Source: Bugula neritina (Eukaryota; Animalia; Bryozoa). From it: a DNA stretch of 64,000 nucleotides. Made by a program: the position numbers and the translations under genes. Numbering within the stretch: position 1 is the stretch's first letter; each line of letters opens with the position of its first letter. Positions 44,901 to 55,809 of this stretch are shown piece by piece. The stretch covers positions 339,751 to 403,750 of the forward strand of contig OZ037773.1 in assembly GCA_964035545.1 (NCBI GenBank). Reading direction: 5' to 3'. The notes under the pieces are model-generated. The model ran no database searches. It worked only from the letters and a program-made list of their open reading frames with translations, and was not told where the DNA came from.

Positions 44901-47900
44901 AATAGCCAGAGAGCAACTGTACTGTCCAATGAAGCATACAGAAGCCATAAATTGTTGGTGGGTTGCTCTCTCTATATACTGCTTACCTTGCATTTTTTTC
45001 CACATAATTTTTGAGTTTCATATTGCGACAAAGCCACATGAAACTTCATGAACATATCTAAATTCCTGTTATCAAAAGATGTAAGTAGCTCAATAGGCAT
45101 CTCAACAATTTTTCAGCCCTTTACAAAGTTTATGTATAAGCATTTGGGATCAAGTATGAGCATATATTCTGTGAAACAATAAGTATTTTTATTTACAGAG
45201 CAAATTCAATCATTAAAATATTTAAATTTTCTATAATCTGTCTATTGCTGGTATTATAACTCCAATTCATCAATATTTTAGCATGAACTAGTTGATATAC
45301 TTGTGTGATACAGTTATAAACAATGATAAAACTTTAGACCTAATAAATATACACTATTGAAGTATTTCTATTCCAGAAGCTGACTAAAGCCGAGGATCAT
45401 GTGTTTATAGCCATAGACACAGACAGTGTGGGGGAACCTAAACAAATTGAAATACAGAATACACTCAATGATATGGACATGCCCAGATACAATGGCAAAC
45501 CTAAGGTGATCATAACTTTACCTGCTATTGACTGCAGTTCAACTGTATTGTATATAGAATACTAATTTTTCTCAATAAGCATGAGTTTTTTTTCAACTAA
45601 ATCTTAGATTTATTTAACAACCTGTTGAATTTGAAGATGTAAATGAAAGCTGGCTATAAAAATGTACAAAAACACCACATTCAATGTTGTAACAAAACAA
45701 ATCAATATGCTCAATCTGCTTGCATAATAATTGATCTTGTAGTTTGGATATTATATTAATTATTATGCGTTGAAAACCAAAGTTATTTTTAAAGCATTTA
45801 AATACATTTCTGCTGTATTGATCCAGATAGCTGTAATACAGAACTCACTATCAAGAGCAGATTTGAATCTGATACCACCAGGTCCTGACTACCTCATACT
45901 CTTGGTGAAGTACAACACAGATAAACATGCAAGGTAATGCGTTGCAAGACTGATTCATTGCTCAATGGTACCATGAAAATGCAAAAACAGCTATAATGCA
46001 CTCTCGCACTCAAAGTTTTTGAAGCAGTAATTGATTGGTTTAGTTGTCGAAATTCAAACACAGAAAGTTGTAAATGTGTATAGCAGCATGTACATAATTA
46101 ACATCATTACAATTGAATTTCTGTATTGAAAATTCTTACATATTTTTTATATTATCATAAACATTTTGATAAAACTTTCGTAGCAATAAACAAGTACCAA
46201 ACATGGAAAAGTGTGATTCAATACATTCCATGATTGCTGAACTCAGCAGTGACCCTGATGTGCAGAAAGTGAGTGTAAACTCTACTCTGAACAAGAGATA
46301 CATCAGAGATAAGGATGAGTGGCTGGCAGATGATGATAAAGTAAGTAAACTAGAAAATGGGAATGTAACTATGTTAACTGTTGGTAAAGCAGGTAAACCA
46401 AATGATGCTAGAGTGGGTAGATGAGATGATGAGAAACAACTGAATACATGATTATTGAATAAGTAAAATAGCTGGTAATAAATAAAAGATAATTGAAGGT
46501 AAAACATTAGCTGGAAACTAATTTTTTTTTCTGTAATTTTGTTAGTTTCAGGTTTATTTACGTTTACATGTCAGCATGACATAATGTTTTCTTCATGGTT
46601 ATATGATAAACCCAATGAACTGCAATAATGAACTAATATTATGAAATTTAATGGATTATCGTATTACAGAAGTACACATTGAATTACATAACCTATTTAT
46701 ACGTAGGTGCCAGCTCTACAGACTTCCATGACTACAGATTTATTTTCTGCACCATTATGTGATGAGTACTTCAATGTTTCCATCAAATATAAGAATGAAA
46801 ATTACAAAAGGTAAATATTAAGTAACATTGATGAGTGCATATCAATGTAGCTCATAAGCTACAACCTTTCATACAAAATTTTTAACTTATGTGCTTTTAT
46901 TTATTTATGTAGAAAAAAGGCCATTAGTTTGATGGGGCACCAATCAGTAGAATCACAAGTTGATAAGCTTAGCTGTGACCCTCAGGTGCAGAGTCTAAGC
47001 ATGAATTCAGCAAGCGATGAAAAGCAAGTGTCGAGCTTTTTAAATAAGACCAACAGAGGAAGAGCTTTAATGATATTCAACAACTTTGACTTATGTCCTG
47101 AACCAACAAGACATGCTAAAACCATTTCTCAAGAAAGAGCAAAAACTTTATTGAATGCCCAAACAGTTTTAGCTGACCATTTTGGGCTTCAAGTAAGCAA
47201 TAAAATATAGAATATTATCAATTTTAATGCAGCTTACGGCCAATGCTAGCACAGACTGCTTTAAATTCCTTATTTCTTTTAGAAGTGTAGTGTTGATTTA
47301 ACCCAACAGCTCCTGTGGTGTAATTGGTTAGCGTGCCTGCTTGCAAGCTGGAGATCTGTGGTTTGAATCCCGGTGGGGGCAATTATTTTTCAAGCTATTT
47401 CGGCCTTTAGTGAAGTGTAGTAGTAGTAGTACTCCAAGGGAGTTGAGAGGCCAGGGGAGCCTGAAGACTGGAGAAGTAGTAGATATAGGTTAGCAGATTT
47501 CAAAGAACTGGGTGGGATGTAGCAATGATTTTACCCAGTAGCCCCTGTGGTGTAATTGGTTAACATGCCTGCTTACAAGCCGGTGGGGGCAATCATTTTA
47601 TAAAAATTATACTTATTTTCTTGAAGTAACGTCAATTAAAACTTGCAGTTAGTCTAGTAATTATTACATTATTATTATTATTGGTGGTGGTATCACAGCT
47701 TTTTAGCTGGTGTAACCTTCTACTATCGGCCTATAATTCAAATAGGCTGGGATGGACAGAACTTTCTTCAAGATGTGAGTTGATCCTAATAAGGCTGTCT
47801 GCTAAATCAGTAAGTATTTGTTTTCAGCTACTCCAAGTAGTGCCATCCAGTCTACAGTCTTGTACAAAGCTTCAACGGCTCGAACTACAATGGGATGACT

Positions 47901-50665: not shown

Positions 50666-51547
50666 ATAATTTTATTTGTACAAAGTTTATAGGTACTGTG
50701 AAATTCCATTCTTTTAGAAAAAAATCTTGTGAAGTTTTTTTTTAAGCCTTACCAGAATGTTTAGCAATTTTTTGATTTAACCTGTTTTTCTGGGTGCAAT
50801 TTAAGGCTACTGAATGTGCAGGCAAAATGCTGAAAAATTGTATTTGCTTGTTTAGAAGCGTTGCTCCACTACAAATATGTCAGGCAGTACTAGGTCTGCA
50901 GCTAAGTTATATATACTACATGACGCATGTGTATATGTACGGTATATTTATTCAACAATGATGCTACTAAAAAGTTGGTATACCATGGTAAGTTTGAAAA
51001 GTTTTTTTTTTCAAATTTTCTGACCAGTTTACATCAGATGTATTAAATACAGCTGGGGAAGTTTAAACTATGGTCTTCAAAATATTTTAATTTATATGAC
51101 TAAATTTCATAATAATATTTTTATATTATTTTTTGATACATAGTATGCTAATAAATTGCATTATTTTATATAATTACATTATGTTTTTAAATATTACATA
51201 TATTACATTGTATATTGATATATCTGTGTGTATAGGCTATGACATCATAATTTCATTTATGCAATAAATTAAATTAATCTCCAAATCCAAAGTAGCACTT
51301 TGTAATAGTATTATACTTAAAGTTCACTAAAATATCTTTATTTGGAAAGCACAACTGATCACTACGAACACATATCTAAAACTGACAATATATACAAACA
51401 ACAAGGATAAAGAGATTTAGAACACAAAGGAACAAAGCACAACTATATTAATATTTATAAAACAGGTTACATAACTGCATGCACATTCCATTTCCCCCTG
51501 ATCTTATCAGATCAAACAAATACTTAATAAAACAAAAAGAAAAACAT

Positions 51548-54500
51548 TTACTCATCTACATAAAAGTCTGCCAACCACCTGGGTGGCTGTCTATCTCTTA
51601 CTGGCCGGTCAATCACTTCGTCTACACTTTCACCTTCTTCAACATTTTCACCATCCACAACTCTATTTGCATCTGCATCCTCATCAGCATTATCTGACCT
51701 CAGGTTAATTTCAATGTCTCTATGTACCTGAGATTGTTGTTTTGTACTGGATGAAACGTCACTACTTTCCCTGTTCCCTGTATTAGCCAATCGGACATCG
51801 CTTACATGTCGTGTCATACCATCTACCATTACTGCAGTGTTCGACACAACCCTAGTAATCGTGCCCTGTGGCCATGCAGTTGTGCATTTAGAATTCACAG
51901 GTTTTACATATACTTTGTCTCCTACATTGTAGGGGTTTTTTGTAATGTCTGTGGGTTTGCCTACTGTTGATGGTGATACTTTAGGCAGCTTTACATTATA
52001 GCTGTATAAACTTCGTGAAGGTATTACATTGTTACTATTTGGAGTGTTGTTGTACCAAAATACCATATTTTCTATTGAGGATCTAGTTCGAGCTGCCATT
52101 CTTTTTATAGTCCTGTGATTGCGCTCTATGACACCATTTCCAGATGCTCTATAAGCACAGCTAAATATGTGCTGTACATCCCACTGGCTAAGTAACTGTT
52201 TCAATCTGTCACTTCTAAAGCATGGTCCGTTGTCTGACAGTAACTCTGTTGGTGGACCACGTTGCTGAAACACCTTTAGTAGGTGATTTACCACAGAGTC
52301 AGCTGTCTCATTCTGCAACTTTATCCACACAGCAAATCTACTTGGACCACAGTCGATAATAGTCAAGTACGGTACACGATTATAATGACTCACATCCATT
52401 GCCAGCCTATACCAATTCTCATTGACCTCCAGAACTCCTCTTTCCCACTGCACTGGAGAAGGGTCAATACTCCTACACGCAGCACATTCCTTGACTACTC
52501 TTTCAACTAACTCCTTGTCTATGCTTTCTCCGAATTTACATTTAGCTAAATAAAATGTTCTTTCAATGCCCAAATGATGCATTCCATGCATCTTGGCTAT
52601 TTCATCCTTCAGGTCAGCTACATCAGGAGTTGTCACACCTGCACTTGCACAGGTTATTCGCTTAGTAAGCCATGCTGAACTCACCCGTGTCAGAGCATCT
52701 GCCCAATTCTCAGCTGATTTCACTAAATGTATTCTTAAAGACAGCTTGTACTCTTCTATCAGTTCCGCTATAACACCTAACCTACGTTTCACAATCATCT
52801 CATTCATGCCATTAACTTTTGGTCTGACACTATCATTGATTACAGATGTGACCCACCTGAATACTGACATTGAATCGGTTTTCACTACAATGTTGCATAG
52901 ATTCCATTTTAAAGCCAAATTTAGGCCTTTTACCACAGCTTCTAATTCTGCTACACTGATGTGGGTGCAATCATCGGGTTTTCTCATCCACGAAGCATCC
53001 TCCACTATTTGGTCATCTATTTGTACAGACACTCCTATTGCCAAACTGCTTGCATCACACCATACAGTGCCTGTATCAGTATTAGCCACATGCCACTTTC
53101 CTTTCACAGGATCAGATTTTGCAACTCTATCTAATGTCTCTAACAACATCTTTTGAACGTGGTCAGACACAGCACTATCCCACATATCTGATTGCGTCAA
53201 CCTTTTCATAAAACTGCATGCTACCCTAAGCCATCCTGCTACAGGAAAATGTCTAGTCAGTTTACCACACACTGAAAACAGCTCTCGCTTGCTTATGCTG
53301 CTATTTGACTCAAGAGATGGTAGCTCACCATCACGCTGCCAGCTATAACATGACATGCCACCTCTATGCCCCTCTCTAACCCTTAGCCCTAAAACTCTAG
53401 CATTACTGAGTTTCTCTGGTTCTTTAGTAACCAAACCGAACTTCAACAAATGATTTCGAACTACTTCTACCGAAACAACAGTCTCATCAACTATAATGTC
53501 ATCTATATAACTATCAGTACCTTTTTGGATAGTGTCATCTTGAGCCAGCACTGTAGATAAAACTTTTGACATGATTTTAGGTGCCACATTTAAACCAAAA
53601 CCTAACCTAGTCATTACATAGATCTTACCCTCATACCGTACAGCTTGAAACCTTTGCAAATCGCTATCCACATGAAGTTGTAAGTAAGCTTTTCTTAAAT
53701 CCAGCAAACTGGCATTGTCACCAAGTAGCCTCCATTTCCTCAATTTATCCTGACAAATGGCAGTGTCACCACTGGGCTTACTGTAGATGTATTTGTTGAG
53801 TTCTCCACTATAATCCATAACAGGTCGAACCTGGGTTGGTTTATTTGGCTGGGCAGCAGCCACCAATGGTACAATTCCAGTGACTGTACCATGTAATTTA
53901 TTGTCATACAATTGTAGCCATCCATCATTAATCCATTGCTGAATCTGCTCATGGTAACTATGCTTGAATTTGTCTTTTACAGCATACTGTCCACATTGGT
54001 TCTGTAATGTCGGTTCACCATTCTCCCATTTCCACCTCACTGTCCATTTTTTACCATCAAATTTAGCATTAAAGTCAGTGTCACTAACAGAAAGTTCACC
54101 TGTACTATCACTAGTTAATGTCTTATCAAATCTATCTACCCCTACACCTAGACTAACAGCACTAACTTTACCAACTTCTGTTGTTGGTTCAACTGCAGGA
54201 AACATCACCTGCTTATTCCTAGTAATTGTCACACCACCTAATTTGCTAATAGCATCTATTCCCAAAATTAAAGAGCAACCACCTACTAACATTGGAGCTA
54301 TTAAACATTTTACAGAGAGATGACGATTTCTAACCTGCACTGCTAATTGAGCTTCACCCCTACATTTAGTTATTTGTCCATTTAGCATTAGAACCCTCCG
54401 TTCAGGACCACATGGTGCAACACCTAGCTGATTACAAAATCTTTCTAAAACTACTGATTGTTCACAACCACTATCTACTAGTGCTTTTATGCTCACACTG

Positions 54501-54601
54501 TTTACATTTACAGTTATTAGTGGTAGCACCGAATTGCAATTTAGTTGTTGGGGTGAGCATCCGGTGCTGACACTGCCCCACCGCCGTTTCCCTGTGGGCA
54601 A
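51548..54601 (-). CDS. pol: Retrotransposon Pol (protease-RT-RNase H-integrase), probably expressed by -1 frameshift
   Basis: LVDSG protease; LDLRKAY and YIDD RT; WCDASS RNase H; HHCC (HGMHH...CAAC) and DDE integrase (MDV, SDNG, IERN); uninterrupted 1017 codons. Confidence 0.92.
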   Translation of the reverse strand: MPTGKRRWGSVSTGCSPQQLNCNSVLPLITVNVNSVSIKALVDSGCEQSVVLERFCNQLGVAPCGPERRVLMLNGQITKCRGEAQLAVQVRNRHLSVKCLIAPMLVGGCSLILGIDAISKLGGVTITRNKQVMFPAVEPTTEVGKVSAVSLGVGVDRFDKTLTSDSTGELSVSDTDFNAKFDGKKWTVRWKWENGEPTLQNQCGQYAVKDKFKHSYHEQIQQWINDGWLQLYDNKLHGTVTGIVPLVAAAQPNKPTQVRPVMDYSGELNKYIYSKPSGDTAICQDKLRKWRLLGDNASLLDLRKAYLQLHVDSDLQRFQAVRYEGKIYVMTRLGFGLNVAPKIMSKVLSTVLAQDDTIQKGTDSYIDDIIVDETVVSVEVVRNHLLKFGLVTKEPEKLSNARVLGLRVREGHRGGMSCYSWQRDGELPSLESNSSISKRELFSVCGKLTRHFPVAGWLRVACSFMKRLTQSDMWDSAVSDHVQKMLLETLDRVAKSDPVKGKWHVANTDTGTVWCDASSLAIGVSVQIDDQIVEDASWMRKPDDCTHISVAELEAVVKGLNLALKWNLCNIVVKTDSMSVFRWVTSVINDSVRPKVNGMNEMIVKRRLGVIAELIEEYKLSLRIHLVKSAENWADALTRVSSAWLTKRITCASAGVTTPDVADLKDEIAKMHGMHHLGIERTFYLAKCKFGESIDKELVERVVKECAACRSIDPSPVQWERGVLEVNENWYRLAMDVSHYNRVPYLTIIDCGPSRFAVWIKLQNETADSVVNHLLKVFQQRGPPTELLSDNGPCFRSDRLKQLLSQWDVQHIFSCAYRASGNGVIERNHRTIKRMAARTRSSIENMVFWYNNTPNSNNVIPSRSLYSYNVKLPKVSPSTVGKPTDITKNPYNVGDKVYVKPVNSKCTTAWPQGTITRVVSNTAVMVDGMTRHVSDVRLANTGNRESSDVSSSTKQQSQVHRDIEINLRSDNADEDADANRVVDGENVEEGESVDEVIDRPVRDRQPPRWLADFYVDE

Positions 54602-55308
54602 TTCCTACTAACATGCCCCCAAGCCTGACAGGTATAGCACTGAACGCTCCATCTTCTGTATTGTTGATGATTATTGGCATTCCGATTAGCATTCATGTTC
54701 CCATTTTGACTTTTTCCAGTGTTACAGCTCCAAGCTGAATGGTGTGGTGAAAAACATTTAAAACACTTTCTAGTAACATTCCTACCAGCAGCACAGGGTG
54801 TCAAAGTGTCTACAGTTGCTGTTGATAACATTATCCTAGCTCTACCAACTAACTCTTCTAAGCTCAACTTTTCAACAGCAGCGACAGATTTTATTTGTGT
54901 AGCAACATCCACTGGCAAACCAGCAATAAATGCACATTTCAGTAAAGGCTCAGGAGTTTTCTGACCTATCAGTGTTACTAGCCTTCTCAAGTCAGCTACA
55001 TAGACATCTACAGCCTCACCTTCTTTTAGACTTCTTGATCTAAGTTGATCGTAAGCACTGTAACTGCTCTCACAGAATGACGTCATCAGTTCAGCCTTTA
55101 ACTTCGGAAAGTCTGATTTAACATCCTCTGAAAACTGTTTATACACAGCAAACGCTGGACCTGCCAAGAATAATGGCAGAAACGATGCAAGATCTTCTAC
55201 TTTCTGTAACTTTGCTACTAGCTCCAGCTTCTCACACCACTCAGTAAAGTCTCCACTAACCGAACTGTCCTCATAATTTTTCACTAGATCCGACACCCTG
55301 ACTGCCAT
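54541..55308 (-). CDS. gag: Retrotransposon Gag (255 aa) with two CCHC zinc knuckles
   Basis: CFKCFSPHHSAWSC and CYTCQAWGHVSRNC; ATG lies ~30 nt after the 5' LTR. Confidence 0.9.
   Translation of the reverse strand: MAVRVSDLVKNYEDSSVSGDFTEWCEKLELVAKLQKVEDLASFLPLFLAGPAFAVYKQFSEDVKSDFPKLKAELMTSFCESSYSAYDQLRSRSLKEGEAVDVYVADLRRLVTLIGQKTPEPLLKCAFIAGLPVDVATQIKSVAAVEKLSLEELVGRARIMLSTATVDTLTPCAAGRNVTRKCFKCFSPHHSAWSCNTGKSQNGNMNANRNANNHQQYRRWSVQCYTCQAWGHVSRNCPQGNGGGAVSAPDAHPNN
54550..54592 (-). promoter_or_regulatory. Putative -1 programmed ribosomal frameshift signal
   Basis: Slippery heptamer G GGA AAC (54586-54592) in the gag/pol overlap, followed by a GGTGGGGCA...TGCTCACC hairpin. Confidence 0.7.
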
Positions 55309-55809
55309 ATTTCTACCACTGATAAATGCCGAAATAGCTTGTAATAGTATTATACTTAAAGTTCACTGAAATATCTTTATTTTGAAAGCACAACTAATCA
55401 CTACGAACACATTTCTAAGACAGACAACATATATTATATAAACCACAAAGATGAAGGAATTTAGGACATAAAGGAAAACCACACAACAGCTATAATAATA
55501 TTTACAAAACGGTTACACAACTGCATGATGCAATGTCATGCACATTACAACATGCAACTCTGTTAGTTTCATATTTCAGTTAGAAAGATTTTTCTTATTA
55601 AAATGATGTATTGTACACTACACTGGCACTGTGTTGGTTAGACTGTTCAATGATGTACAAAGTATAGAAGATGATTGTATTTCAGATGCTCTAGAATAGT
55701 TAACCTGACCAGCTAATGGTCGTGTTGATCATATGCTGATTTAGTCTCCAGGTATTTAAATACGAATATAATGTTAAAGGACATACTCACACTACTATTT
55801 TCAACACAG

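Follow-up and report, generated by a model that had tools for sequence, protein, structure and literature searches.

A 12-nucleotide site complementary to the 5′ end of tRNA-Phe as a candidate primer-binding site in an LTR retrotransposon lineage of Bugula neritina

The choice and positioning of the primer is a core replication step of LTR retroelements and retroviruses. A 2019 survey describes three primer types: a complete tRNA, a half tRNA produced by a cut in the anticodon stem, and a self-primer (PMC6317226). Reviews of Ty3 and of endogenous retroviruses give the same exceptions. Canonical sites (TGG...) pair with the 3′-terminal 8–18 nt of a tRNA. Half-tRNA priming occurs in copia, Ty5, and the plant elements Osser and Bianca (PMC5371799, PMC6317226); these systems use the 3′ end of a ~39-nt fragment of tRNA-iMet or tRNA-Ile cut in the anticodon stem-loop, and the site pairs just before the cut. 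In Tf1 of S. pombe, the RNA of the element pairs with the site through its first 11 nt, and the resulting RNA–RNA duplex is cleaved by the element's RNase H (PMC6317226, PMC6934838, PMC5006619).

Here we examine a 12-mer, AGCTATTTCGGC, that follows the 5′ LTR of a retrotransposon in a 64-kb window (the whole stretch of Bugula neritina DNA analysed, 64,000 nucleotides). Like a canonical site, it lies directly after U5 and is complementary to a host tRNA; the tRNA species also seems to switch among lineages, with the match to the host's tRNA maintained. However, it faces the opposite end of the tRNA, has no TGG, is fixed at 12 nt, and would need a cut. It resembles half-tRNA sites in that an internally cut tRNA fragment, and not the native CCA end, would be used, but here it is tRNA nt 1–12 that would pair, and the tRNA would be cut in its D stem. 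As in Tf1, the putative primer is taken from the very start of an RNA (11 nt there, 12 nt here), with a site abutting U5, a duplex-end cut required for the 3′-OH, and a copied primer that would stop at the natural 5′ end of the RNA. The differences from Tf1 are that a host tRNA would act in trans here in place of the element's own transcript, that the LTRs here hold no complement of the site, and that Pfam does not place pol in the Tf1/chromovirus type.

The window element and its miniature companion

The window contains an autonomous, env-less gag-pol element of ~4.2–4.25 kb (Table 1). An earlier note on this DNA, made by a model from the sequence alone, had placed the site correctly; its geometry needed correction as to strand, since the element and its two LTRs lie on the minus strand. 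The LTRs start with TGTAATG (5′ LTR) and TGGAATG (3′ LTR), and the true start was fixed by the common TGTAA and by 5-bp target duplications in sister copies. The 5′ LTR ends in ...AATACTATTACA and is followed directly by the 12-mer. The junction thus reads TACA and then the site, with no TGG, just as the earlier note had it. In sister copies, the base following ...TTACA of the 3′ LTR is A, C, T, or G; because these flanks begin with any base, the LTR ends in CA and the next A is part of the 12-mer. Nineteen nucleotides separate the site from the gag ATG at 55308, and the last 61 nt of gag are shared with the start of pol.

Table 1. Features of the autonomous element and of the TRIM in the window
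Feature	Position	Strand	Description
5′ LTR	55340..55549	−	210 nt, TGTAATG...TATTACA; from LTR alignment and reading
TATATAA in 5′ LTR	~55440–55434	−	
AATAAA in 5′ LTR	~55382–55377	−	
Putative primer-binding site AGCTATTTCGGC	55328..55339	−	Complement of host tRNA-Phe(GAA) nt 1–12
gag ORF	54541..55308	−	255 aa; Pfam Retrotrans_gag, CCHC knuckle
pol ORF	51548..54601	−	1017 aa; protease, RT, DUF7047 connection-like domain, RVT_3-type RNase H, integrase
Polypurine tract region GATCAGGGGGAAA	51491..51503	−	Adjoins 3′ LTR
3′ LTR	51301..51490	−	190 nt; length class differs from 5′ LTR
TRIM 5′ terminal repeat	47286..47392	+	~107 nt, TGTAG...TTTTTCA, tRNA-like core
TRIM putative primer-binding site AGCTATTTCGGC	47393..47404	+	Directly after ...TTTTTCA
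TRIM internal region	47405..47517	+	Ends in purine tract GGGTGGGA (~47505–47517)
TRIM 3′ terminal repeat	47518..47602	+	~85 nt, 83 per cent identical to 5′ repeat, internal deletion

The element has the defining parts of an LTR retrotransposon: two direct LTRs with TG...CA ends, target duplications, gag-pol, and a polypurine tract. Perfect 5-bp target duplications flank eight of ten sister copies, and at least ten full copies are 99–100 per cent identical across LTR, site, and the start of gag, with open pol frames. The polypurine tract, the TG...CA ends, the 5-bp duplications, the intact ORFs, and the near-identity of the copies mark the window family as a working, recently active element. 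A polypurine tract of the GATCAAGGGG type is also found in a second family of the genome (family B) and in two further elements, L036 and L149.

The window copy itself (51296–55554) has an inverted partner, L046 (contig positions 307605–313637), ~83 kb away and ~27 kb before the start of the window. The target duplications of the two are exchanged (CATGT/AAGTG in the window copy, ..GTG/CATGT in L046), as are the LTR length classes (210/190 and 190/210, respectively). The swapped ends suggest that the two inverted copies recombined and thereby inverted ~83 kb, the breakpoints lying within the elements. Such an inversion would also account for the identity of only ~93 per cent between the two LTRs of the window copy.

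With up to one mismatch allowed, the window contains two occurrences of the 12-mer where 0.12 are expected, and none of 100 shuffles reached two. The second occurrence directly follows the left repeat of a TRIM, where the earlier note had also seen it. This TRIM is 317 nt long, with terminal direct repeats, an internal primer site and purine tract, and no ORF. Its family has at least forty copies, 78–85 per cent (~80 per cent) identical to the window copy, and the exact 14-mer (CA plus the 12-mer) is kept in twenty-two of the forty copies listed. The TRIM presumably borrows the same machinery as the autonomous element. Its repeats also have a tRNA-like core, GGTGTAATTGGTTAGCG ... GGTTTGAATCC, similar to the A and B boxes of Pol III, with a run of five Ts just before the closing CA. 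ARAGORN called no tRNA in the TRIM terminal repeats; transcription by Pol III would be unusual for an LTR element.

We also looked at Logan assembly contigs of runs guessed to be RNA, which as contigs can neither prove a transcript start nor show a 12-nt RNA. Probable-RNA contigs are continuous over gag, site, U5, and R, up to an upper limit at ~55400–55414, and none covers 55443–55483. This fits a transcript start ~25 nt after TATATAA. In contigs of two runs from two studies (X2, X3), the LTR end ...TATTACAA is joined to a different downstream sequence, CTGCTAACTTGGTAG..., and in one low-depth contig gag and the site are joined to unrelated sequence that replaces the LTR. These odd junctions may be solo-LTR read-through, other non-autonomous partners, or assembly chimeras.

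The pol protein has the PR-RT-RH-IN order found in Ty3/gypsy elements (Metaviridae). With Pfam, RVT_1 scores 22–24 bits, below the cut-off, and DUF7047 lies between RT and an RVT_3-type RNase H; the same search found no RT_RNaseH, RT_RNaseH_2, or BEL/Pao domains in pol. An AlphaFold model of pol (mean pLDDT 76.5) aligns over ~690 columns with the PR-RT-connection-RNase H of foamy virus and HIV-1, and a sequence search of the PDB matched only the integrase, always to retroviral integrases. Pfam leaves the lineage, which is large, uncharacterised; hundreds of its members come from aquatic and soil metagenomes, on contigs of ~4 kb, and it is also present in a bryozoan and a leafhopper. The env-less gag-pol, the DUF7047 between RT and RNase H, and the predicted PR-RT-connection-RNase H-like fold resemble the retrovirus-like layout of Odin, a likeness that may or may not reflect kinship. 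Odin has a retrovirus-like dual RNase H layout and is reported only from sea anemones, with no mention of a primer site (PMC9040795). We considered identity with Odin and rejected it, as that paper confines Odin to sea anemones and holds no primer-site data (PMC9040795).

Match to host tRNA-Phe and conservation of the site

The 216-Mb host genome has five tRNA-Phe(GAA) genes identified with ARAGORN, all of which begin GCCGAAATAGCTCAG / GCCGAAATAGCTCAGTTGGGAGAGCG. The site is complementary at 12 of 12 positions to nt 1–12 of each, which bears out the complementarity that the earlier note had drawn from metazoan tRNA-Phe in general. On the tRNA, pairing would run through the 5′ strand of the acceptor stem, then U8 and A9, and into the D stem as far as its third base. 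The pairing cannot be extended: tRNA nt 13–15 (CAG) do not match the LTR end ACA, and at the other end lies nt 1 of the tRNA. At 12 bp the duplex is short (predicted energy −18.7 kcal/mol), which counts against a priming role. The junction does not fit a canonical site, with no TGG and no match to the tRNA-Phe 3′ end (...UUUCGGCACCA).

Within the genome, degraded copies of the window family carry point changes in the site (AGCTGTTTCGGC, AGCTATTTTGGC). Three further families of the same lineage have pol proteins 49, 42, and 40 per cent identical to that of the window family and unrelated, unalignable LTRs. All three read ...ACA, then AGCTATTTCGGC, and have LTR pairs that are 100 per cent identical; 5-bp target duplications can be read in the 49 per cent identical family. 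Across the whole genome there are 103 exact CAAGCTATTTCGGC sites (CA plus the 12-mer), compared with 0 for the reversed control. When the four middle bases are left free (ACAAGCTANNNNGGCA), TTTC fills them in twenty-eight of fifty-one matches, and every other filling is a singleton.

Outside this genome, pol has hundreds of relatives at 40–55 per cent identity, most of them from metagenome or transcriptome contigs of ~4 kb, with others in the bryozoan Watersipora subatra and the leafhopper Macrosteles quadrilineatus. The leafhopper locus reads ...TTACA, then AGCTATTTCGGC, and the bryozoan locus ...GCACA, then AGCTATTTCGGC. An element from an ENA assembly (55 per cent identical, unrelated LTR) reads ...GCTACA, then AGCTATTTCGGC, then ATAACATAATG. 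A profile-based scan of metagenome contigs gave eighty loci, and wherever the 5′ leader is intact a 12-mer of the same form follows the LTR end. The exceptions seen are partial or disrupted copies, such as L137, in which pol has no gag ORF upstream. Conservation among homologous elements, on which the earlier note had staked its claim, thus held both within the genome and across species.

Aligned over fifty-seven distinct LTR-end contexts, the block is exactly 12 nt long. Conservation is 0.91–1.0 at positions −3 to −1 (ACA), high across the 12-mer, and 0.33–0.56 from +13 onward. Free variation within the block is confined to +6 to +9, which face tRNA nt 4–7. The invariance at +1 to +5 and +10 to +12 is partly built into the pattern used to collect the sites, but the outer edges and the restriction of variation to +6 to +9 are not. 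Judged from these comparisons, the site is under strong constraint, common to autonomous and miniature elements.

The same profile bears on whether a true canonical or half-tRNA site has been missed, either a TGG-type site farther downstream or an anticodon half. In the window family, a stretch with TGGTAG (TGGTAGAAAT) does lie 22 nt after the LTR. However, this stretch is not conserved in the lineage's other families, does not match the tRNA-Phe 3′ end, and is too distant from U5. Conservation falls to background right after the 12-mer, and no conserved TGG-type block was seen in the leaders. An anticodon-half site of the copia/Ty5 kind is excluded by the match coordinates, as the match is limited to tRNA nt 1–12 and stops at the LTR edge. 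We therefore regard a missed site as extremely improbable.

The fifty-seven contexts fall into a small set of site types. The most frequent is AGCTATTTCGGC (19/57), followed by AGCTATCGCGGC (11), AGCTATCTAGGC (10), AGCTATCACGGC (7), AGCTATCCCGGC (3), and AGCTACCTCGGC (3); AGCTAGCCGGGC and AGCTATCCGGGC were each found once, and other single forms account for the remaining two. In tRNA terms, nt 8–12 (UAGCU) and nt 1–3 (GCC) are fixed, and nt 4–7 in the inner acceptor stem vary. Such variation is the way in which one tRNA would differ between distant hosts. Two of the rare types point to a different tRNA. AGCTATCCGGGC is the complement of GCCCGGATAGCT, which we take to be the 5′ end of tRNA-Lys(UUU) and which starts five tRNA-like genes (GCCCGGATAGCTCAGTCGG) in the genome that the window comes from. 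AGCTAGCCGGGC is the complement of GCCCGGCTAGCT, presumably the 5′ end of metazoan tRNA-Lys(CUU).

We constructed a quick maximum-likelihood phylogeny of pol for thirty-five elements; the search was left unfinished. On this tree, site type changes at least thirteen times. The window family, family B (L048), and family C (L058) fall into three different clades, and all carry the host Phe type. In other samples, their closest relatives have sites of the GCGA or GGGA type. Because host families in separate clades share the Phe type and their sisters from other samples differ, site type on this tree follows the host and not the descent of the element. Such tracking is expected if the site has to fit a host RNA or is copied anew from one.

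For the metagenomic elements, ARAGORN found no host tRNA gene beside the element on sixty loci. Exact scans of viral contigs with three variant 5′ ends found only phage-borne genes for tRNA-Thr, Phe, Met, and Leu, which are uninformative for eukaryotic hosts because the contigs are phage. In the phage tRNA arrays (L161, L162, L164, L165, L166), tRNA-Phe(GAA) begins GCCTAGATAGCTCAGTTGG, the complement of one variant site. This match is probably a coincidence of tRNA-Phe conservation.

Candidate priming mechanism and its alternatives

We think it probable that the 12-mer is the minus-strand primer-binding site, that it pairs with nt 1–12 of tRNA-Phe, and that the primer comes from a tRNA cut between nt 12 and 13. 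The complementarity and its constraint were read from the sequences; that the paired RNA acts as primer, and that the cut lies at 12/13, we infer.

One alternative is self-priming of the Tf1/sushi type, in which the start of the element's own transcript would fold back on the site and supply the primer after a cut, the match to tRNA being incidental. In the minimum free energy fold of the presumed R-U5-site RNA, nt 2–11 of the guessed start do pair with bases 1–9 of the site, with two G-U pairs and a bulge, but this fold is no better than those of shuffled sequences (z = −0.79). The LTR of one family (L055) contains an 11-pair, G-U-rich complement with p ~0.01 among fifteen tests; RNAduplex energies were at chance level against shuffles in fourteen of the fifteen elements. 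Among the five defined LTRs, the best ungapped complement is 7–8 of 12 bases, again chance level, and no LTR of fifty-two elements has more than 9 of 12 complementary bases. We then swapped site types among these fifty-two elements, using the upstream 200 nt. An element's own type scored 7.15 of 12 and foreign types 7.10 of 12 (p = 0.79), and the positions of the best complements were scattered. An apparent cluster of weak complements 58–99 nt from the LTR end was gone in the larger ungapped test. Moreover, one site equal to a host tRNA is common to unrelated LTRs. The earlier note had named pairing with the element's own 5′ end as the result that would undo its reading; the site showed no pairing with the LTR or 5′ end beyond chance, and we hold self-priming to be very improbable.

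A second alternative is that the site binds the tRNA 5′ end for some other purpose, such as packaging, control of translation at the gag start, or masking, and that another primer is used. The gag ATG lies 0–30 nt beyond the site in most elements, as a role at the gag start would have it. Nor is a cut tRNA species known: to our knowledge there is no abundant tRNA fragment ending at nt 12, and the 5′ tRFs we know to have been described are all at least 14 nt long. The site also contains UUUCGGC, the same sequence as the 3′ acceptor strand of tRNA-Phe, so that it would open the acceptor stem. Against this alternative, the site begins in every element at exactly the first base after U5, where the 3′ end of a primer must sit; the TRIM, which has no gag, still keeps the site; and no other primer site, of TGG type or self type, was found. 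We consider a non-priming role unlikely.

If the 12-mer is indeed the primer-binding site, then the primer would be tRNA-Phe nt 1–12 (GCCGAAAUAGCU), from which the complement of U5 would be synthesised. Since nothing separates the site from the last base of U5, the primer's 3′-OH would have to be at U12, which calls for a tRNA cut between nt 12 and nt 13. The cut could come before or after annealing, in the D stem of a free tRNA or in a tRNA already on the site, and the acceptor stem would have to open for pairing. DNA synthesis from this primer would copy U5-R as usual. The plus strand, when copying the primer, would run off the natural 5′ end of the tRNA, and this run-off would account for a site of exactly 12 nt that stops at nt 1. 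The tRNAs used here all have A9, as we take it, so m1G9, which blocks pairing, would be avoided; m2G10 is still able to pair.

As to what makes the cut, the analogy with Tf1 suggests the element's own RNase H acting at the end of the RNA–RNA duplex. This is a guess that we put at somewhat short of even, and a host nuclease is about equally likely.

A possible fourth primer class and its consequences

A literature search in which subscription journals and Repbase lay mostly outside our reach found no description of priming from a tRNA 5′ end. The literal 12-mer strings led to tRNA-focused papers (tRNA-Phe probe sequences) and to unrelated ones, and among these, as far as their titles tell, none concerns retrotransposons. 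We think it rather unlikely, though by no means negligible, that a prior description of the site exists.

Tentatively, and with more doubt than confidence, we propose a fourth class of primer, consisting of the 5′-terminal 12 nt of a host tRNA (Phe, and in some lineages a Lys type) that would anneal in trans and be cut by the element's own RNase H. If this is true, a fourth solution to the priming problem is added by a lineage that is deep and widely spread, with members in bryozoan and insect genomes and in many aquatic and soil metagenomes. It would require either cleavage within the D stem or a Tf1-like RNase H cut made in trans, and the lineage would then be a mechanistic bridge between tRNA priming and Tf1-type self-priming.

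There are also consequences for host control and for annotation. Silencing by 3′ tRNA fragments would miss these elements, and site finders of the TGG type will label them, though active, as having no primer site. Finally, if the proposal is true, the site reads out the 5′ end of a host tRNA, and could serve as a 12-nt tag for assigning hosts to metagenomic elements.
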